NCBI RefSeq assembly: GCF_000315625.1
Contig: NW_005434538.1
Coordinates: forward strand, 113,865-149,793
DNA length: 35,929 nucleotides
From: Guillardia theta CCMP2712
Taxonomy: Eukaryota; Protista; Cryptophyta
Reading direction: 5' to 3'
This document shows, one piece after another, positions 7,086-35,820 of the stretch (position 1 is its first letter; every line of letters starts with the position of its first letter). Made by a program: the position numbers and the translations under genes. A model generated the notes under the pieces. The model was given only the letters and a program-made list of their open reading frames with translations, was not told the DNA's origin and made no database searches.

Positions 7086-8373
7086 GAGCTCCTCCTCCTC
7101 CTCCTCCTCCTCCTCTTCCTTCTCCTCCTCCTCCTCCTCCAGCGCTACTTATATCCTGCATACCTGCTATCGTTGAGCCATGGGTGGGACAGGAAAAAAA
7201 AAGTCATTGTCACCTCCACCGGTGACCGGAAGGTCTAGAGTGGGACAATCGAGGGGTGGGGTGGGGTCAGTAGTTCAAACGGTTGAAGTCAGTCTGGCAG
7301 TACCGAAGTTTTTACCCAACAGGGCCGGTGTAGTGTGGCCGGCGGTCGGCCGGGCGGGCCCGGCCCGGCAAGTCGACTCGCTGCCGCGGAGTAACCGGCG
7401 TGTAGTCCTGGCACTGGCAGGCTCAGTCGACGGACTCGACGTGACTCGGACGGTAACTGATCGATATATCCGATTATCCGTAAAGTTCATCCTCCTCCTC
7501 CTCCTCAGTCTTCCTCAGCCCGGGCCCGGCGCTTTCTCCTCAGCCTCCGGGTCTCGCCGGGCGGCTGAAGCCTCCGAAGCCTCGGAAGTTCTCCGACTCA
7601 GTGTTCACGGTTTGTACCCGTAGTTCCCTTCTCTTTACTCAAAGTTAAGTTAAAATCAGTACGAGCTACCGCATGATGTTAAAAGTTACTTTTGATGGGT
7701 ACAGTAGTACCAGGTTTTCTTTTTTGCTCAGTTTAGTACTACCGACTACCCTTTACTACCCAGTAAAATCACTCAATTTGATGTTACTTGCCTTGAGGGT
7801 GGGGTAGTTTGGAACGGTTCTTGGATGGGGTAAATAACCGGGTATTTGAAGGGTAATGAGGGGGTGGTTTGTCCGGGAAATTGAGGGGCACAGTTGCATG
7901 ATGGGTGGGGTACACGAGAAGTCGTAAATGATCTTGTTGCCAAATGCTCCAAATCTGTACTATAAAATTTGGAATATACAGTACCCAAGATTTCACATTT
8001 GAAGTTAGATAGAAATTAATCGTGAACGACTAGGGAGACAGACGGAGTGAGAGGGTGGAAGCGTTAGAGCAGAGGGACATCGAACCTGCGGCATGGCGAA
8101 GGCAGCAGCATATATTGAAGTGCGGCATGGCGAAGGCAGCAGCATATCATGAAGGCTAGGATGATGGCTCAGAAGCATAGATGAACCAGCAGAAACATCA
8201 TGACGATCGGGTCTTAGCAAGAAATACCTGCATTACGCACTTTTGTTCGATATCTGACGGAGCTTGAACAGGAACGTGCGTGCTTGAGTAAATTAGCCTT
8301 CACATTTAAAAAGGCAGGTGAAATATGCCAGGATAGCATTCAAACTCTTGCCACATATCGCCGTCGTACAACA

Positions 8374-11300
8374 ATGAGCAAGAGCGAAGAAACGAACCTG
8401 CACAGTTTGAGAACGATGGATCCAACAGATTACCAAGTCTCCATGCAGGCCCTTGACAGACAGCTGAAGGAAAATTTCACTCTGCTGTACATGATCAAGC
8501 CAGGAAACTATTTGCAATCGAAACTCAGGATGCAGGCCCTGTACCGCGATGGCTTTGTCTCTGCCCTGTTTCATGAAGAGAGTATAAAGGCACTGTACGC
8601 CATTCGAGGAATACAATTCATCTCCTTCACCGTCGGTTGGTATCTGGTCACCAGGACCTACCTAAATTCGTTGACTTACCGTTATCATGAGCACCGGATA
8701 GTCAAGGTGGAAACGTTTGTAGTGCAAACGGATTATCAACGACAACCCACTGCGATAGATTTCAGTCTAGCCAGCTGCAGCTGGAAGACCAATCTCCTGT
8801 TTGTGATTGACGTTGCACACGGAGTTTCTTACATTCTTGCCTCCATCTTCGGCTTCTTTGAGAAGACAAAAACCCCGAAAGCGGTAGGCAAATGCAAAGC
8901 GGGCTTACTTTTTTGACGCATTTTGAACTCATTTCAGGTGATTTGCCTGGGTGGACTGATTGCTGGGATCGGGCATATGATTCTTTTTCTTGGAAATGAT
9001 GAGAATTTTGTCAAACCAGCGAGTTATCACTGTTTGGTTTCAAGCCTTGTGGTGAGTGTTTCCATGAATGGCCTTCACTTGTTCTGATTCCTTTTTCAGT
9101 CATTTTTGGTCTTCCCGTGTCCGACTGTCTTCAAAGAATCTCTCACCTTGGAGTTGATGCTTTCTTCTCTTGTCATTCTATCCATCTCGCTTGGGGCAGG
9201 TGGCACTTTTGCAGTTGAGTTACTGACAGCGATTGGGCTGTTTTCTGCTATCTTGGTGACCAAATACGCCATCATGATCGCTGTGCGTATTGAAGCGAAG
9301 AAAGACACAAACGCTTTCGATGAAGCATGGCGCTCGATCACTCAAAGTTCATTCGTTCAGGCAGACCTAGGAACGACAGAGCAGATCTTGCAAAACTTTA
9401 TGTTGTCTTGTCCTGGGCTCAACTCGCAAGATGCGATACATACCTTTGTGATGCCTGACCGCCCGACCTCGGACATGATCGCAACAGACTCCTCTCACCT
9501 GAAAGTGTCGGGCAGCTACAGGTCTTCTGCGTTCTCGATGGAGTCGTCATTCTCTCTGTCCAATTCTTCCTTCTTTGCCGGATCTATGCCGACATTTCCT
9601 GTCGCAGATCTCGATCAGCTTTATGTCCGATCTGTCTTAGTACTTCCCATGTTTTTCCGTAAGCTGATTGCTATCGGAGGTGTGAGCAAGGGATATTGTT
9701 GTTGCATGGACGAGAGAGATGGATCAAAACAGTACATTCTCTACAAAGAATTAGGTCAATCCCCTGACATGTTCGCGAGCATTTACGACGCGAGCTTGAA
9801 GCGAGTTGATCGTGCGGTGGAGAAAGTCTTGATTCACTTGCAGGGTGAAGTTTGTCGGATCACCGACGTCGTTCGGCAGAACATGCTGTTTGACAACCTG
9901 CATGACTTGAACGTGGCGCTGAAGCACTGGCTAGAGGACCCGGAGGTGAGGGTGATGCATGTTCGAGACCGTCTCAGCAACGGACACAGCGGTTATCGCG
10001 ATATTACTCTCATTGTGTCGTTTGTCAACAGTGTGGCAATGCACAACAACGTGCTGGGGCACGTCTGCGAGGTTCGACTTTCCCTTATCTCTCTGCACTC
10101 CATCATCGTACTTGGCAAGCACACACAATACCTGCGGAGGAAGATGGTGTTGCGAAAAACCAACAAAGTCAAGAGAGGGAGCCGGAGAACTTTGCTGCTC
10201 GTCAACCTTCATTGGAAGCAATTCCTCCGAACTTTCTCGTTTGCCGTGCATCCTGCCGCCATCGAACGTTGTGCAGTGAACCAAAGCTCGTTGCTGGCCT
10301 CGTTCTCCCCTACCTCTTCTTCCTCTCCTCCCTCTCCTCTCTCTCCTCCCTCTCCTCCCTCTCTCTCTCCCCCCCCTCCACCCCTGTGCCCAGTGCTCAA
10401 CTTGAAGAGCATCTTGCCGGGAGGCTTCTTGGACCATATGGTGAAGTCAGCGGATGCGGGCGTGCACGACTCGAAGACGGCGAGTGTCATCTTCTCCTCG
10501 CGTCCTCTTACCAACGTGATCCACAAGCCCCTCTTTCAGCTCTGCCTGGTGTTCATCGGCTTCATGCTTGTGGTCAACTACGCCATCGACGACTACTACC
10601 CCGTGCGGGAGATGAGGACCCGGACCCTCTTCTCTGTCGCGCATGCTCGCGTCACGATAATCCGGCAGAGAGATCCCTCGCTCGCCGACCCCTCAGTGGT
10701 TCCCATCCAGAAGGTGAGCTTCCTCCGAGACTGCAAAAAGTTCTCTCCTTCGTTCGTAGGTAGGAACGGGTCTCAGCAGTTCTACTCGTTCTCCCGTCCT
10801 GTCTCTGCACATGGCTGGGAGTTCTACACCAATCCCGACGTCTCCTCCTACTACAGCGATCCCCTTGCCTTCGACTTGCACGTGCTGGGGGAGGACGAAG
10901 GAGTGAATGATCCCATTCGCGCCAACGAGACGCAGTGGGAGCTGAGGACAAGATTTGACTGCAGCATGAACCGTGCTACTGCTCTGTGTCACTCAGAGGA
11001 GGCCAACATCTCCCGCACGAGGGACGTTCGCTACTTCGTGGACCTGCGGATGGCCTGGCAGTGCGCCTTCGAGCTCGTGAACATCGGCCTCCGCTTCCTC
11101 GCCTGCTTCGGCACCGCCATCTTCGTCAACATGGGAAGGACGTACTGGGGTAAAACGGTCTGCGCCTGCGCATTCTTTGGCCCTGGGATCTTTGACCTGT
11201 TGAACCTTATGTTCACCCCCTTTACTGTGCTGGAGTTCCTGCACAGTCTTAGCTGGGTGGTGATCGAGTTGGGGTACGGGCTCGTGATGCAGTTCAAGGA

Positions 11301-12369
11301 GGAGTACGCGCTGACTTGTCTTCCTATCTTTGCGCTGAGTGGTTCATTCTTCAATACCCTCTTCACTGACTTGAGAGCACGGGAGGTCATCATAGACTCC
11401 AGCACGATCCGACTCAACCACGTCGTCCTCTTCTCCGTCTGGTTGTTCCTGTGGCTGTGGAGGAAACACCTGCTGTACAAGTCCTACAAGAAGGTCGAGA
11501 AGGACTTGGTGGAGTACGAGGAGCTCTGGAAGAAGGTGGCGGAGGATGAGGAGACAGTCTCTGCGCTTCGTGTGAAGTTTGCCAAGATCGCCCACAACCA
11601 CCAGTCCTCGTCTGCCCTCCAGCACGTGTTCCTGTGCCCAGGGCCAGCGCTCAAGAGATTTCTGCTCTGGATGGAGAGGACTCTGCATGTGCAGGTGGAA
11701 GATGAGTGGCAGCACGAGCAGGGTAGCAGCTCAAGGCTGGGCTCGCTGACAGACATCATGAGGCATCTGAACCCGCTGTCATCCCACCTGCGAATCTCTT
11801 CCCTCGAGCAGCTTTACGCGCAAGCACTGATGGTGCAGCCTATCTTCTTCAAGAAGCTACAGGAGATCGGGTCTCAGTGTAACTGCTTGTTCCCTGTCAG
11901 CGACAGGTCGAGGAGGGCGGAGCGGTACATCACGTGGGCCAGCGCCTATGAGGGCGGGGGTGGGGTACTCGCCGTGAAGCCGCCGATCCTGAAGAACGTG
12001 AACCGGGCGATACAGAAGGTGATCCGGTCCTACAACGGTGACGTGTCGCGGCTGGTGGACATAGTTCGCTATGCGCTGGTGTTCGAGGACATACGGGAGC
12101 TGTCGAGAGCGATCGATATCATCCTGGAGGACCCGCATATTGAAATCATGAGGGTCAAGAACAGGCTCGTGCAGAGTTACAACGCCTTGGCGTCTGTGGG
12201 ATACCGAGACATCTGCCTGAACATCCGCATCTCCAACGATGACACCAAGAGATTCTGCGTGGCTGGGTACCGCTGCGAGCTCCAGCTCGTCCTCAAGAGC
12301 TTCATGGACCTGAGAGTGGAGAAGGGGCACAAGAACTATCGGATCTTCCGCGATCAGAGGTGCGAGTAG
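8374..12369 (+). CDS. Multipass membrane protein with two tandem RelA/SpoT-like (nucleotidyltransferase) domains, ~1,300 aa
   Basis: Exons 8374-8883, 8938-9051 and 9100-12369 (54-nt and 48-nt phase-0 introns). The 5' end may extend via an exon at 8218-8275 and a 42-nt intron at 8276-8317. Domain 1 (~9600-10140): LKRVDRAVEK / DVVR / RVMHVRDRL / GYRDITL / CEVRL. Domain 2 (~11800-12366): LKNVNRAIQK / DIVR / IMRVKNRL / GYRDICL / CELQL / GHKNY. Each domain is preceded by a block of about 6 hydrophobic helices. Confidence 0.8.
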
Positions 12370-15310: not shown

Positions 15311-18300
15311 ATGGGCTGTGATTGGTCCAAGGGTGCTGGAGGGTATTCCAACTACGATGAATTCCCCGACGGTCCCTACTCCCTCCTCAGTGTGTCTGTG
15401 GAGGATATCAGAATACCGAGGAAACTGAATTCGAAGCGCGGATCAGCCAAGAAAAGGTGAATAGAACATCATCAACATCGACGCAGCCCTTCCTTCTTTG
15501 CCGTCTGCCTCACCCTCGCGCCCTAGTTTTAGACTCGACGTCCCTCTCCTCTCTTAACTCCCCTCTCCTCTCATACCTCCCCTCTCCTCTCTTACCTTCC
15601 CGCCCCTCCTCTCCGTCTCCATCCCCCTACTTCCCCCCTCGTTGCTCTCCTTGCTACCATCCCGCCTTTCAAGTCTCCCCTTCCTCGCTGCCACCCGATC
15701 AAACTCGCTGTCGATGTAACCCTCGGCTATAGAGACAAACGGAAGAACAAGTCAGAAGGACCAGAGAAGGGGCGAAAACGAACTCTAGATGACGAGGTCG
15801 GTTTGATCCTGATTGTTTGAAACTCTGAGAGGCTGATTGCAGACTCCTGATCCTAACGTTAATGAGATCCCGAAAGGGTTCAAACTGAATCTCGGAAACG
15901 TCAAACCTGTTGTGGATGACAAAGACTGTGAGCACTGTGATGTTGACTGTCGATTTGTTATTCATCCTGTCTTCAGTCGCAAACAAGCACGAGAAAGATG
16001 TGCCTGCGAAGAAACCAGAGCCAGCAGCTCATCCAAGGTATCCATCTGATTATGCCCGGTTTGTGACAGACTTTCATGATGTCTCTTTACAGACTTGGCC
16101 TACCATCGATGGAAACGAAACTCAAACTGGACATATCGAAAGCACAAGAGATTCCTAGGGAACCCACTGAGAGGCAGCTGAGGAAGGAGAAGCTAGACAA
16201 GTACGAGAAGGAGTGTACCCGCATCACAGACTACCTGTATGTTGGAGGACTTCACGTGGCCCAGAACTTGGAGCTCTTGAAAGGAGTTGGTATCTCCCAC
16301 ATCATCAACTGCAGCAGAATCACTTCTGAGAACTTTTTCCCGGACTCTTTTACTTACATGTCTATTTACATCAACGATGCGCCATCTGAGGACATCTCCT
16401 GTCACATCTACGATGCTGTTCACTTCATCGACAAGGCTCGTAAGGCAGGAAAGAAAATTTTGGTTCATTGCACTCAAGGGGTGTCGAGATCCTGTTCAAT
16501 TTGTATTGCTTACACCATGTTGAAAGAGAAAGTCTCTTACGATGAGGCTTTTCAGCGACTGAAATTGAAAAGAGGCATCTGCAACCCAAACGCAGGATTT
16601 TGCAGCCAACTGGTGCGATGGAGTAAGAGAATTCTCGATGTACACGCTTGGAGCCCAGAGTCAGTTGCCGATGCCGCTCCTCGCCTGTTCAAAGTGGATT
16701 TTTATTATCCCAGCGTGAAGGAGGCTGGGATTTCTGCGATGTTGATAGAGAACAAGGGGAACGAGGACGTGGAGCTATCTCCGGACTGTGTCTACATCGT
16801 CGATGGTCCATTGGACATCCTGATTTGGATTGGAAAGTCATCAACGAACGCGCACGTTCAAGCTGCAAAGGAGGCTGTACAGAATTTTCAGAGGTATGAA
16901 GGATCGCCATCGGGGAGCGAGGAGGTGAAGCAGGGGGAGGAAGCTGAGCGGCATGTGGCGCAGCTGAGGAAGTTGCGATGCTTGCTGCCAGGAGGGGGAG
17001 AGGCGAAGGAGTACAGTCGATCTTCTGACAAGACCGAGAAGACCATTGTTCCCCTGTCATCAACGCGAGATCCGCAGTTGAAGGAGCCAGCAGTGCAGGA
17101 GACGTCAAGTCCGTCCACGTCCGACTCCGGGGACGTGTCCAACAAGAGGAGTTTCCCTCAAGGAGGAGCAAGCTGCACCGTCCAAACCCCACGAGGCGGA
17201 AGGTCGGATGCTCCCATCTTCAACATGAAGGTGAGGAGATGAGAACGAAGATGACGATGAGGAGGAGGATGAGGAGGAGGTGGGAGAGGGGGGAGGACTG
17301 TAATGATGCTCGAATGATCGTGATTGAGGACTTGATAATGTTGCCTATGCCGATGGAGATGAAGGAAAGAGGGATGGATGGATGGGTGAAATGGATGTGA
17401 GTTAGGTAGATGATAGATATCATGACGGAATGTTTCAGCTATCGTTGAATCTGCCGACTGCTCAAGTTTCTCCCGTGAAGGAGGCGGTAGAAGAAACCAA
17501 GACTTCTCCGACCCCTTCAAGTCCCTACAGTCAGGATGGTCAAATGATGCGGATGTTTGAGATTGCAGAGGATCACAGCAAGGTGAATTTCACGTCCATT
17601 CCTTTCCTCCTCCTCTCTCCCTCCTCCTCTCTCCCTCCTCCTCCCCTCCAAGTTCTCTGCTTGTCCATTGGTTTTTGGCAGTCGTTGCATATGGGTATCG
17701 TCTTTCCCGCCGCTCTCCTTCATCCTTCTTCCCCTCTCTTTCTTCACTCCTTCATAGCATGCCTGGTTTCTTCCTTGTGATTCATGATGATACCAGTGGG
17801 ATGAGCTCGACAACTTCGATTCCGATGACTTGTGGCCGAGCAAGGTTGGGAGGGGAGAGAGGGGGAGGGGAGAGAGAGGAGGATGAAGTGGAGCGAGAGG
17901 GGAAGGGGAGCGAGAGAAGGAGGTTCTGAAGGGGTACTAGGCCTTCATTCTCCTAGAGCGATCGGAGGATGCAGTGCCTGCGTACGTCTGGATCGGCAGC
18001 GAGTTCGAAGGGGTTGAGGTGAGGAGGAGAATCTCTTTGGGTTTTGCCCGCTCATTCTCCATGCGCAGGATGTCGATGATGAGGAGGAATGTCATGAGTT
18101 TGCAAGGAAGTCTGTCAAAACCTTCACCAAGGTGTCTCCTCTGCTCCTGCCACTCGACTCTCCTCTACCTCCTCCGTCTCCTGCTCCTTCGTGTTCATAT
18201 CCCCTCCTCGTCAGTCTTTCCTCTCTTAACGTCTCCTGTTTCCCTCAAGTCTCTCTTGTATGTCCTTCTTCGATGTCTCCTTGTGTCTCTCTCGAGCTGA

Positions 18301-22732: not shown

Positions 22733-23962
22733 TCATTCGAGTTCCTCCTGCACCAGCGGCATTACTCTGTTGGTCATAACCGTGACTGGCTCGCTGATGA
22801 AGATCCGCTGGGGCTGGGCCCCTGCTGGCTCGTCCTCCGGCCCCGTCGCCTCCGCAGAGTTGGCCCATCCTAGCTCTGTTGCCTTGCCCTTGGCGGCGCT
22901 GCTGAACTTGAGCTGGGGATCTCAGTGTCAGTGAACAAGGCGGGGCAGGGGAGGGAGGGGAGGGGAGGGGAGGGGAGGGNNNNNNNNNNNNNNNNNNNNN
23001 NNNNNNNNNNNNNNNNNNNNNNNNNNNNNNNNNNNNNNNNNNNNNNNNNNNNNNNNNNNNNNNNNNNNNNNNNNNNNNNAGGGAGGGAGGGAGGGAGGGA
23101 GGGAGGGAGGGAGAAGGAGCATGGAGACGCGAAGCAGGAGGAGGGAGAGAAGCAGGTACCTTTGAGCCGCCGAAGAGAGAGGTGTCAACGATGAGCGACT
23201 CGCCATGCTCCGAGATGTCAAGGCCTCTGCTCTCGTCCTCGGGGGAGCATCGGATCCCGTACCCCATCAGCTTGTTCATGACCTGTGCCGTCGTCAGGTA
23301 CCGGTTATCATGGCAGTGAGGGGGGGGGAGGAAGAGGAGGAATAGGAGGAAGAGGAGGAAGAGGAGGGAGAGGAGGAAGGGGGAAGTTAGCTACCAGATC
23401 TAAGAGCTTGAGCATGACAAAAGTCATGACAGCACAGTAACTGGCGATAACGACAACTCCGTACAGCTGGATGTAGATCTGAGAGAGACAGAGGTCACCC
23501 TTCCCCGCTTCTTGTTCAGCTGTACTCCACCTGGGAAGGCTTCCCGTAGAAAGCGCCATTGATCGCTTCAGACTTGGTCACTTTCTTGTTGGCAAAGAGC
23601 CCCGTCAGGAGGCAGCCGACCACACCGCCGATCCCATGCATGCCGAACGCGTCGAGCGCGTCATCGTAGCCCTGCCATGCTGTCAGTAAGGGAGGAGCTG
23701 AGTCGAGGGGTAGGCGAGAGCAAGGGGAGCGGGGAGAGCAGTGAGAGCTGAAGAGAAGAGAAGGAAGAGGGCGAGCAGGTTCAGGAAGCTGTCTCATTCA
23801 CCAGGACATGCTTGAGTTGGATGCTGAAGAAGCACACGAGACCTCCAATGGCTCCGATGATGACAGCCCCGGTCTGATCGACGTACCCGCAGCTAGGCGT
23901 GATGGTGACGAGACCCGAGATGGAGCCGCTGGGGACACGGTGAATAAAGATGGGGAGTGGAA

Positions 23963-24053
<91 letters not shown>

Positions 24054-24081
24054 GTGATGATGGTGATGGTGATGGTGATGG

Positions 24082-24133
<52 letters not shown>

Positions 24134-24220
24134 GGTGATGGTGATGGGGAAACCTGACGATTCCGACCACGGTAGTGGTGGTGATGATGGTGATGGTGAT
24201 GGTGATGATGGTGATGATGG

Positions 24221-24270
<50 letters not shown>

Positions 24271-25208
24271 GGATGATGACAGCTCTGTGGAAACCTGACN
24301 NNNNNNNNNNNNNNNNNNNNNNNNNNNNNNNNNNNNNNNNNNNNNNNNNNNNNNNNNNNNNNNNNNNNNNNNNNNNNNNNNNNNNNNNNNNNNNNNNNNC
24401 GCCAGGTCCCCATGCCCAGTGCGCGACGGGACAGTAGACGAGGAGATGCCACATGGCGATAAAGATGAGCATGGCGCTGTAGCGCATCCTCTCAGCGAAG
24501 GAACCGCAGATGATGGCGGCGCTGCCGTGAGGGTCAGTCATACTCTGCTGCTCGCTCCGAGCGGAACCTGATGACGGCAAAGGTCATCTGATACACCATG
24601 TACAGCTTCTCCGCGTCCTCTCCCACGTTGTGCCCGTCAACATGTGCCAGCCAAAAGTTGGTCGTGTTGCCCATGAACGCGTTCCCCTTAGCAGTCACCG
24701 CCATCAGCTCCACACGCCTTACACGCCTCCACACGCATCTTCACCTCGCTGAAGGCGATAGAGAATCCCATCGCAAACCAGAGGAAGCTCACGATGCACA
24801 TGATGGAGAAACTCTGCATCACAGTCGACAGGACGTTGGGGGCCTGCCATCTCCTCACTGTCTGCCTAACGATATGTCCACCTGCTCCCACTTGTGCCAA
24901 TCCACCGTAGAACATCGCGAGGCCGGGAACGGTCATCATGACTACCAGGATCGTAGCCACTGCGTCAGCATCAGTTGCTCCTTCGTCCCACAAAGCACAG
25001 AAGGGCATTTATTTCGCACTTAGCATCCACGCTGTATCGCCATGCGACGCTGTCTAGTGCATGCCTCGTCAGGACACAAGAGTGAGGGCCATGCTTGGAG
25101 AGCTCTTACCTCCTGCAGTGTCGATATGGCCGAGGCCTGCGCCGTCTTGAAGAGAGGCATGGAGTCAGCAGGGCTGGTGGCAACCAGCAAGGCAGGACAA
25201 CGACTCAT
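22733..25208 (-). CDS. amt: Ammonium transporter, AmtB/Mep (AMT2-like) type; middle exons hidden by an N gap; termini approximate
   Basis: Spliced segments give HGDTAWML, MTVPGLAMFYGGL, NVLSTVMQSF, YQMTFAVI, AIICGSFAERMRY, LVYCPVAHWAWGPG, GSISGLVTITPSCGYV, YDDALDAFGMHGIGG and EDESRGLDISEHGE. Confidence 0.95.
23962..24269. repeat. Long (GAT/GGT)n microsatellite in an ammonium-transporter intron
   Basis: About 300 bp of gat/ggt triplets adjacent to an N gap. Confidence 0.95.
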
Positions 25209-33021: not shown

Positions 33022-34412
33022 GATGGGGGTCGCGCTATTGGGAGCCTGAGGGTGGGGGTTATAAGCAGAATTGATGAGGGTGGTGAAGCCCGCATAATGG
33101 TACCATGAATAATTAGTCTAATAAATAATTGAGAAATTTAGTACTAGTATCAGTAAAAGTAGCTTAATAGATTGGGGGATGATATGGACCCCCTAGTTTC
33201 ATGTAGCACCGGCGTAGGTGAAACAAGTGGGGTAGCCTGTGCAAGTCGGGGTAGGGGTTGAAGGAAAGGAGGTGGGTAGTTTAGTACCAGGAAGGATTGA
33301 ATTAAACCGGTACTTTTCCATCAGAATGGGGGCTGAGGACAGAGAGGGGGTAGGGTAGTACCATGCTAGGAAGATCTCCGTGTTGGGTATATGAGCACTA
33401 AGACCAAGAAGCCAACATATGATGTCGGTGGGGTCGTATTGTTCCAAGGTGGGGTACTTGAAGGGTAAATATGGGGTACTGATCATAAATGTGGGTGAAC
33501 ATTTAGTACATCTCAAAGGGGTGGGGTAGTCAATTTTAAAAGTTGAATAATAGTTTTACCTCAACCCCTGCAATTGCCCCACCCCTACCCTCTCTATCCC
33601 TCTTTCTACACCACCCATCCACATCCACCCCTAATACCCCTTCCTCCCTATGATACCCACCCTATATCGTAAAAGTGTGTACCCCAACCACACCATCTCC
33701 TTCTTTTTACCCCCTCATATTCCCTTGACAACAAGACACGGTTACAAAGGTACCCCTACCCTCATTACCACCCACCTTCTTGTATTGATCTTATTACTAT
33801 CCACCCCACCTCGTTACACCACCCATCCCTCCTTACATCCACCCTACACCTCCCTGACCCTTGCGGTACCCCTGCATCCCCACCACCAGCCCTCAACATA
33901 CCCCCTTGTACCATCACAAGTTTTGTTACCCCAAAGTCAAGTACCCCCACCATACTTTTTCCCACTATATACCCCATGTTTATTGTTCATTACTCTGCTT
34001 TCTTCCCACCCCCACTCCCCTATCATTAGCTGTGTCGCGATGGGTCATAACTAGTCACTACCCCCACCCCCCCAAGTCAAGAGCCCCGAAATGTAGCTCA
34101 TCCCCCTCATCTTTACGTCATCCCCCTCATTCCCATCTTTTTCACTTATCAGTATTGATGTTCGGGCCTGCCTCAGTCTCTTCCGGCTGCTCGCTCGACC
34201 GCTCCTCCCTCCCTCCTTCCTTCCCCCCCCCTTCCCCCCCTCCCTCCTCCCTCTTTCCTTCTCCTTCATGACCCCCCCTTCCTGAGAGCTCTCGGTGTTA
34301 CAAGACGTCAGGGCCCTTGCCCCCACTCCCTGCCTTCGCTTTCTTCTCTTAAACTCTCCTCCTCGCTTCTGCCGCCCATAATCAGCCCGTCCATGGACTA
34401 ACGTTGAGTGAG

Positions 34413-35820
34413 ATGGCAGCAGCATGTATGGAACGAGTGAGCTTCCTCGGAACTGGGTCAGGATCCGGGGAGGGAGGGAGGAGGGGGTTCTCCTCCCTGG
34501 TCCTCACTACCAAGAAGGGGTCCCTGGTCATGGTGGACTGCGGCGAGGGGACGCAACTGCAGATGAGGAGGACGTATTTTCAAGGTCCTCCAGGAACAAA
34601 GTGCATCCCAGCTCTGAAGATGAGCAGAGTTCGCGCCGTTCTGATCACACACCTCCATGGCGACCACTGCTTCGGCCTCTTCGGGCTGCTGACCACCATC
34701 AGTATGCAGAGGATGAGGAGGAGGCTCGTCCTGGTGGGGCCAACAGGGCTGGAGAAGCTGGTTACCTCTGTCCTCAGCGTCTCTGGGAACTCCGACGAGG
34801 AGCTCGCCCTGAGGTTCATAGAGCTGGACCCGACGGTCCCGCATGAGCTCGAGCTCGAGCTGGAGGGGGAGGAGGGGAAGGAGGGGCTCGCAGTGCACGC
34901 GACTCCTCTGCAACACAGCATGCCTGCTCTGGGGTACATCCTGCTGGAGAAGGAGCAGCCAAGAGAATTGGACGCGAGGAAGGCGATGGGGATGGGAGCC
35001 AAGGGGAAGGAGCTGGGGCTGCTCAGGGCTGGGCAGGACGTGACGGTCAACGACATGCTGATCCGAAGTGAGGACGTGCTCCTTCCTGCGCCGCGGAGGT
35101 AGAGCGCCGCCCACTGTCTGCTCCTGCTGTCTTCTCCTGATGTTCCTCGTCTCTCTATCCTTCTCCTCCTCCTCTTTCTCCTCCTGTATCTGCTTCTGTC
35201 CCTGTCCCTGCTCATTCCCTTCAAATACTCCCCGTCTCCATCCTACTCCCTCGTTTCCTTCCTCCCAACCTCTGGTTTCTCCCCCTTCTCCTCCCCGGCT
35301 TCCAACACCGCCGTCCCCTTCCCTTGACCTCGAGCATGGCAGGAGAATGATTGCCGTCCTTCAAGACACGTGCGGGTCCGAGGAGGCGCTAGAGTTCCTG
35401 CGGCAGAGGAGGAGAGACTTCGACTTTCCCGTCCTCATCCACGAGGCTACCCACGAGGCAGCCCTGCGCGAGCTGAGCCTGAGCTGGGGTCACTCGACCT
35501 CGGAGATGGCAGGAGAGTTTGCGGGGCGTTGTGGGGCGCAGCAGCTGGTCTTGACGCACTTCTCGCCCCGATACTCGTCCTGTCCCATGAGGGAGTTTCT
35601 GCGATCCGGCGGCGAGGAGGAGGAGGAGGAGGAGAAGAAGAAGCAAGGAGAGGAGGGGCAGGTGATAGATGAGAAGAGCACAAGGAAGCTTGCGGAGGAG
35701 GCGCTTGCAGCGGCGCTGCGGTGCAGGGAAGAAGGAGGGAGTTTCGGCGTGCTGTGCGCAGAGGATTTGATGAGCCTGAGCGGGAGAGACTTTTCGGAAG
35801 TTTTAATAGATGAGAGATGA
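34413..35820 (+). CDS. rnz: Ribonuclease Z, short form (ELAC1/rnz-like tRNA 3' endonuclease)
   Basis: Exons 34413-35098 and 35343-35820 (phase-2 intron). Motifs: FLGTGS, VDCGEGTQ, ITHLHGDHCFGL, flexible arm GAKGKELGLLRAGQDV, QDT, HEAT, GHST, LTHFSPRY. Confidence 0.93.

Follow-up and report, generated by a model that had tools for sequence, protein, structure and literature searches.

Closest described systems and the fold of the catalytic domains

To our knowledge, the characterised alarmone synthetases of eukaryotes are plastid enzymes. The long RelA/SpoT homologue (RSH) proteins of plastids (RSH1-4/CRSH) share their synthetase superfamily, and their nuclear encoding in an alga, with the gene described here, which lies in a 35,929-nucleotide stretch of contig NW_005434538.1 of Guillardia theta CCMP2712 (the window) and is predicted to encode a multi-pass membrane protein with two synthetase-like catalytic domains, C1 and C2. 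The window protein differs from the plastid enzymes in having no HD domain and no leader, and in being membrane-embedded with its catalytic domains predicted to face the cytosol. Plastid RSH identity was ruled out, as no HD match was found in the gene and its N-terminus is hydrophilic and colinear with that of relatives, in line with an earlier note made from the DNA alone, which had seen neither an HD domain nor a plastid leader.

Animal adenylyl cyclases with twelve transmembrane (TM) helices have the order (6TM-C)x2 and unequal catalytic domains. The window protein shares both features, a likeness that is topological only: the catalytic folds are unrelated, no class III cyclase being present among the structural matches of C2, and the window protein has an ectodomain between TM1 and TM2. 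The cyclase-like topology suggested in the earlier note therefore holds for the order of the parts and not for the catalytic fold. Sensors fused to synthetase-only, non-plastid RSH domains are represented by CapRel and by fungal NLR proteins, in which RelA_SpoT effector domains have been predicted, their activity being predicted only (Dyrka et al. 2014; PMC4986451). Those sensors are soluble and cytosolic, whereas the window protein is multi-pass with an outer domain. No description of membrane-embedded or tandem RelA_SpoT forms was found in the literature searched, in which subscription journals are poorly covered, and (p)ppApp has not been reported from plants or algae according to a 2022 review (PMC10107265). 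The domain itself is of a known kind, and its fusion to receptors has already been predicted in the fungal NLRs; new here are the assignment of Apk-type motifs with phage relatives carrying GYRD, and the segments spared by gene conversion between C1 and C2. Tentatively, we read the protein as a receptor-enzyme, a stimulus-gated pyrophosphokinase that probably makes (p)ppApp and in which C1 is regulatory.

The window protein gave no Pfam match when each exon and domain was searched; PF04607, named in the earlier note as the family to compare, was matched weakly by 33 of 109 relatives (best E 1e-5) and not by the window protein. A profile built from 109 family domains matched only Tas1 (E 4.6e-5) and RelP (E 1.8e-4) in the PDB. 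The structural model of C2, with a predicted local distance difference test (pLDDT) score of 93, recovered RSH proteins in all of its top 40 Foldseek matches, and structural ranks 1-11 were all RSH synthetases, the next, unrelated structure following at Z 6.5. Z scores were 14.3, 12.7 and 12.3 for RelP/RelQ (the first for B. subtilis RelP, with a root-mean-square deviation of 2.8 over 150 aligned residues), 11.5 for CapRel, 10.8 for Tas1 and 5.4 for FaRel2. By this model C2 folds as an RSH synthetase, as had been proposed from the order of its motifs. Domains of similar structure occur elsewhere in fusions with TPR repeats (631 aa) and with a Peptidase_S78_2 domain from phage.

Across the 109 domains (23-76% identity), K75, K83, D97, R100, R146 and E170 are invariant. 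The Syn1 lysines K75 and K83, the Syn2 aspartate D97, the Syn3 tyrosine Y145 and the Syn4 glutamate E170 are present in both C2 and C1. FaRel2 binds donor ATP, Mg and the acceptor base through K66, K74, R77, D90, Y128, E145 and Q147 (PMC11782079), and by motif spacing these would correspond to K75, K83, R86, D97, Y145, E170 and Q172 of C2; on the same mapping, the two adenine-stacking arginines of FaRel2 are not matched in C2. C2 is compact, at 200 aa, with catalytic residues that can be named, and it is likely to be catalytically active.

A different role would be that of two non-catalytic nucleotide binders, which gate a channel, transporter or scaffold from inside (inside-out). C1 is already altered and 12 TM helices in tandem are a typical transporter arrangement, both of which would suit such a role, as would the middling matches of the helix bundle in a fold search (TMEM45A Z 9.8, urea channel UreI 7.6, SatP 7.2). 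These values are within the chance range for helical bundles, however, and the fold search of the membrane part gave no clear match. The TM segments are poorly conserved, alignment A2 having no invariant column in them, while the Mg-binding Asp and the Syn4 Glu are kept at 100% in C2 and in single-module members. A purely non-catalytic role is accordingly very improbable.

Unequal catalytic domains and gene conversion

A search of the 87.1 Mb genome assembly (669 contigs) returned 86 domain matches, counted as some 30 tandem genes plus some 24 single or partial loci, about 54 loci in all. The tandem set compared here consists of the window gene and 20 paralogues, with about nine tandem genes and most single loci left out. 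C1 of the window protein is homologous to C2 by sequence, so that the earlier claim of two RelA/SpoT-type domains stands, without the equivalence it implied: at 20 diagnostic positions, C1 departs from the family consensus at seven (R86I, R128H, K130R, N131D, N151I, Q172R and R194K, in C2 numbering) and C2 at none. The same asymmetry was seen in 35 tandem proteins from the database, where C2 keeps 13 diagnostic residues at 100% and C1 retains K83 and D97 at 100%, E170 at 97%, Q172 at 49%, Y145 at 40% and R86 at 26%. Over the 21 tandem genes of the genome, in which the paralogues are not independent of each other, the mean number of departures was 4.1 for C1 against 0.1 for C2. The ratio of nonsynonymous to synonymous substitution rates (dN/dS) is well below 1 in C1, which rules out its decay, and is also below 1 in C2; the asymmetry is under purifying selection.

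In 16 of the 21 genes (L142-L156 and L158), long blocks of C1 DNA match the gene's own C2 at 96-100% identity, at synonymous sites as well, indicating gene conversion between the two domains. Two stretches are spared. The first comprises about 10 codons after K83 and has near-identical DNA on both sides in L152, L153, L154 and L158; the second comprises everything from about Q172 on. These stretches carry the C1 signature, namely the loss of R86, the change of Q172 to R and an altered last helix, and so mark the residues that set C1 apart. Because conversion spares the segments with C1-specific changes, the asymmetry looks selected, and kept against conversion. Exceptions are L150, in which C1 is converted up to Q172, and L154, in which C2 has gained R172. 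The window gene belongs to a clade without conversion, its C1 and C2 being 31% identical, yet it bears the same C1 signature. An assembly artefact could still account for the near-identical blocks, but is made less likely by their being gene-specific and by P0019 (94%), a similar case in independent metagenome assemblies.

As C1 is altered, the pair probably consists of a catalyst and a regulator, and C1 is more likely than not the regulatory copy. An active site shared between C1 and C2 is not expected, because RSH active sites lie within one domain.

Membrane layout, acceptor and proposed mechanism

The two halves of the product align to each other (BLASTP E 1e-27, 26% identity over 293 aa). 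Each module consists of TM1, an outer loop or domain, five further TM helices, a coupling helix and a catalytic domain, and the membrane parts of modules 1 and 2 align with an hhalign probability of 99.2% (E 6e-19, relatives' sequences being used for module 1), giving the same six helices in each module and a 6+6 layout. In an AlphaFold model of the membrane part of module 2 (pLDDT 92), TM1 is followed by a beta-sandwich of about 140 aa and five helices, the last of which is continuous with the D...Y..LW helix. The module order given in the earlier note was borne out, except that its loop after TM1 is this beta-sandwich in module 2 and a remnant of only about 45 aa in module 1; other tandem paralogues have the full beta-domain in both modules. 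Per 100 aa, the beta-domain carries 1.77 N-glycosylation sequons and the catalytic domains carry 0.23; the K/R-rich loops (before TM1, TM2-3, TM4-5 and after TM6) lie on the catalytic side. Judged by sequon density and loop charge, both catalytic domains are on the cytosolic side and the beta-domain is on the luminal or outer side, which agrees with the 12 TM helices and common cytosolic side expected earlier. The location is probably the secretory pathway, and within it probably the plasma membrane.

The beta-domain is fixed in length and not built of repeats. Pfam PF00754 (F5/8 type C) was matched weakly in two of 64 members (best E 0.006), and a fold search, for which the model of the whole membrane part was used, gave weak likenesses to a galactanase beta-domain (Z 6.6), a C2/PLAT domain (Z 6.1) and lactadherin C2 (E 0.7). 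Positive selection on the domain was not found, dN/dS staying under 1 in every pair for which dS could be measured.

Enzymes that make ppApp (Apk) and ppGpp have been distinguished by Syn2 (RYT against AVR), Syn3 (GxN against SxH) and Syn4 (YH against IR) (PMC12226406). The ppGpp-type forms are absent from the family, in which YxSxH and ExQxR (Arg at Q+2) each occur in 0 of 109 domains and Syn2 reads D-x-x-R. Tas1 has the motifs K..RA..K, D-x-x-R, GYSGVN, EIQVN and GHKYYE, and C2 has the same Syn1-Syn2 spacing; its Syn2 is D-I-V-R-Y-A against D-L-A-R-N-T in Tas1, Thr at R+2 being kept only partly. C2 thus resembles Apk1/Tas1, the (p)ppApp synthetase of the P. aeruginosa type VI secretion system (PDB 6OX6), in its RSH fold, and both Apk1/Tas1 and the MuF-fused phage toxins Apk2 in Syn1 (K..RA..K, in which Arg is missing at position -2 from the Lys), in Syn2, in the absence of S-x-H and ExQxR, in a C-terminal GH..Y helix and in having no HD domain in cis. 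It differs from them in Syn3, which is GYRD and not GYSGxN, and in an additional R-x-K-N-R motif; the domain stands behind six TM helices and an ectodomain, a membrane module replacing the PAAR or MuF delivery domain, and is duplicated in a eukaryotic, intron-containing gene of a multigene family. RelP and RelQ (SAS2 and SAS1), the best structural match, share Syn3 G-Y-R, E-x-Q and a His in the helix after Syn4; unlike these soluble single-domain enzymes, C2 has no Syn1 R-x-K, Syn2 G-x-R, Syn3 S-x-H or Syn4 ExQxR.

A DNA pattern for Syn1-2 alone had matches in 103 phage contigs. Among 52 non-redundant phage domains, 39 carry GYRD, 50 carry ExQ and 46 carry H..Y, none of which was in the search pattern. 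As this set was selected on a hand-made Syn1-2 pattern, and covers phage contigs with bacterial chromosomes left out, only the downstream motifs are independent evidence. GYRD, which the earlier note had remarked on in place of GYxSxH, is the usual Syn3 of this phage Apk-like group, and phage toxin-like domains with GYRD are the closest non-eukaryotic kin found. No relatives were returned when a family domain was compared by tblastn with plasmids and phages, nor when prokaryotic genomes and viral contigs were scanned with back-translated sequences. In a quick tree made without ppGpp outgroups, a long, fully supported branch separates the eukaryotic family from the phage set, the direction of transfer not being shown by the tree. 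Phage loci L096 and L070 have small open reading frames and then an HD hydrolase downstream, in L096 in the order apk2-iapK-aph1. The phage group (L036-L115) lies within proteins of 300-3700 aa, among them a portal fusion (L071) and a ParB-like fusion (L041).

Given the Tas1-type Syn1 and Syn2, the absent ppGpp forms and the GYRD phage kin, an adenosine nucleotide is the best guess for the acceptor, with about even chances of being correct. In the proposed mechanism, a stimulus acting on the outer beta-sandwich or on the membrane bundle would move TM6, and the movement would pass along the continuous cytosolic coupling helix and release the catalytic domain. C2 would then transfer pyrophosphate from ATP to the 3'-OH of the acceptor, most likely an adenosine nucleotide, and the resulting (p)ppApp would serve as a regulated signal or metabolic brake in the cytosol. 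C1, as a retained and re-purposed copy with an altered donor-ATP site, would regulate C2 by nucleotide binding or by docking. Gating from outside is considered fairly likely.

Several points weigh against this mechanism. The C2 model is nearer to the ppGpp makers RelP/RelQ (Z 12-14) than to Tas1 (Z 10.8); Syn3 of the family is Y-R-D-x-[C/A/L/N] and not the G-x-N of tested Apk enzymes, Asn at Y+4 occurring in 14 of 109 domains and Gly never among the common Syn3 forms; and no assayed GYRD enzyme was found in the literature. The Apk1-like clade also holds the ppGpp-only or dual makers VpEAS, AaEAS and SaEAS (PMC12691689), and motif swaps failed to switch specificity (PMC12226406). P0019 shows the reversed asymmetry at Syn4. 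No ligand or clear fold match is available for the beta-sandwich, which module 1 has lost and the dinoflagellate relatives do not have. Finally, searches of the genome for a stand-alone HD hydrolase returned none, and intron-split genes or Nudix enzymes could have escaped them; the absence counts against a messenger, since a reversible one would be expected to need a hydrolase.

Some of these points would equally suit another acceptor, such as GTP or GDP (giving cytosolic ppGpp), the 3' end of tRNA or RNA (a translation shut-off like that of CapRel and FaRel2) or a small molecule new to this fold. C2 scores highest structurally against RelP/RelQ and CapRel (Z 14.3, 12.3 and 11.5), the product is not fixed by clade membership, and further positions are almost invariant in the family (R-x-K-N-R at 128-132, R146, N151 and R194). 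The guanine-recognising S-x-H of Syn3 is missing throughout, however, Syn2 and Syn4 are not of the RSH type, and FaRel2 is a weak match whose stacking arginines are unmatched. An acceptor of this kind is consequently judged somewhat unlikely.

It was also considered that the output could be immune execution, in which a virus, parasite or damage cue would release toxin-level (p)ppApp, leading to ATP drain and arrest or death, with C1 as a safety catch. The missing hydrolase and the toxin ancestry favour a toxin, as do the lineage-specific growth of the family, with its clusters, broken copies and mosaic paralogues, the precedent of the predicted fungal NLR receptors and the likeness to Tas1/Apk2 toxins. 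A messenger is favoured by an ectodomain that shows no diversifying selection and is neither variable in length nor repeat-built, and by apparent expression in culture: up to 95% of the words of the region are present in several assemblies of 20-44 Mb, guessed to be RNA (culture-transcriptome-like), which suggests that the window gene is expressed. Routine expression fits these assemblies, although a silent armed state would still be compatible with them. Execution is considered unlikely, and the output is more probably signalling than killing.

If active, the protein would represent a new class of receptor-second messenger or receptor-executioner system in eukaryotes and a phage toxin domain domesticated for signalling, and some 54 loci in one alga couple the synthetase domain to an outer sensor-like domain. 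In a broader and more doubtful view, cryptophytes may have turned a phage or bacterial Apk-type toxin domain into the output of a large cell-surface receptor family, with (p)ppApp or a related 3'-pyrophosphorylated nucleotide as cytosolic second messenger; the tandem members would have converged on an adenylyl-cyclase-like design of one catalytic and one regulatory domain, the difference being kept against gene conversion.

Gene model, relatives and surroundings

The features of the gene are collected in Table 1. The spliced product of its three plus-strand exons is 1,297 aa long, in keeping with the internally duplicated product of about 1,300 aa described earlier, and the ten motifs quoted from it were found in frame and in place. 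Exon 3 (9100-12369, + strand) has no intron inside and spans both C1 and C2, which rules out two separate genes and upholds the single gene of the earlier note. The model was compared with the database exon by exon and not as a joined protein. Residues 6-168, 170-202 and 206 onward of the Hanusia phi transcript-derived protein P0003 correspond in order to exons 1, 2 and 3, the product of exon 1 being 48% identical to the first of these segments; since the exons map contiguously onto P0003, both the splice model and the ATG at 8374 are supported, the latter as the start of an N-terminus that had been called uncertain. In P0001, a transcript-derived Hanusia orthologue, the C2 region is 74% identical. 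A pseudogene and bacterial contamination were each considered for the window gene and rejected.

Table 1. Exons, introns and protein features of the gene, in window positions
Feature	Position	Strand	Description
Exon 1	8374..8883	+	Hydrophilic N-terminus without signal peptide or plastid leader; module-1 TM1 (~8593-8664), ~45-aa outer loop, TM2 (~8794-8859)
Intron 1	8884..8937	+	54 nt, GT-AG, phase 0, in-frame stop; junction corresponds to P0003 168/170
Exon 2	8938..9051	+	Module-1 TM3 (8938-8994) and first half of TM4
Intron 2	9052..9099	+	48 nt, GT-AG, phase 0, in-frame stop
Start of exon 3	9100..9345	+	Rest of module-1 TM4, TM5, TM6 and coupling helix 1 (D..F...W, 9298-9330)
C1	9589..10158	+	RSH-synthetase domain, altered; retained are the two Syn1 lysines, Syn2 Asp (9865), GYRD (9991), Syn4 Glu (10069)
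Inter-module linker	10159..10500	+	Ser/Pro low-complexity stretch
Module-2 amphipathic helix and TM1	10501..10590	+	TM1 ~10528-10587; AF2 model, pLDDT 92
Module-2 beta-sandwich	10630..11043	+	~140 aa, putative sensor; three N-glycosylation sequons; weak F5/8-type C/CBM likeness
Module-2 TM2-TM6	11056..11544	+	TM6 unbroken into coupling helix 2 (D...Y..LW, 11497-11529)
C2	11779..12369	+	Predicted intact RSH-synthetase domain, Tas1/Apk type, to stop; K75 (11992), R79, K83, R86
C2, further residues	11779..12369	+	D97 (12058), R100, GYRD (12199), E170 (12277), Q172, H187

At the 50% identity level, matches to the domain fall in 1,732 clusters, details being taken from the best 150 of these. Named relatives are Hanusia, Rhodomonas, Cryptomonas and Hemiselmis, and transcripts of dinoflagellate strain TGD supplied two proteins (P0211 and P0212) that join a multi-helix membrane part to the same catalytic domain without the beta-sandwich; the homologue survey proposed in the earlier note thus yielded, among the named relatives, cryptophytes and these two dinoflagellate proteins. 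P0195 has an additional N-terminal domain of about 500 aa before the membrane module, with no Pfam match. Within the G. theta genome, the two canonical RSH genes with HD and synthetase domains (G000:C47:131263-132737 and C24:131220-132315) are separate from the family. The paralogues L142 and L143 are mosaic, with 61% identity in TM2-6, 96% in the beta-domain and 98-99% in the catalytic domains. In L148 and L157, module 2 and C2 are in different frames (an intron or a frameshift). Upstream of L152 lies a single-domain copy that is split, a partial copy at L154 is inverted, and the copy at G000:C72:221316-221804 contains four stops.

No Aph1-like or immunity genes were found for the window gene, the neighbours of which are unrelated: a glycoside hydrolase 9 (156-1361), a dual-specificity phosphatase (16076-17242), an ammonium transporter exon (23798-24580) and a metallo-beta-lactamase-fold protein (34404-35102). 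About 250 nt upstream of the start codon, a direct repeat of about 27 nt is present in two copies (8088-8150).

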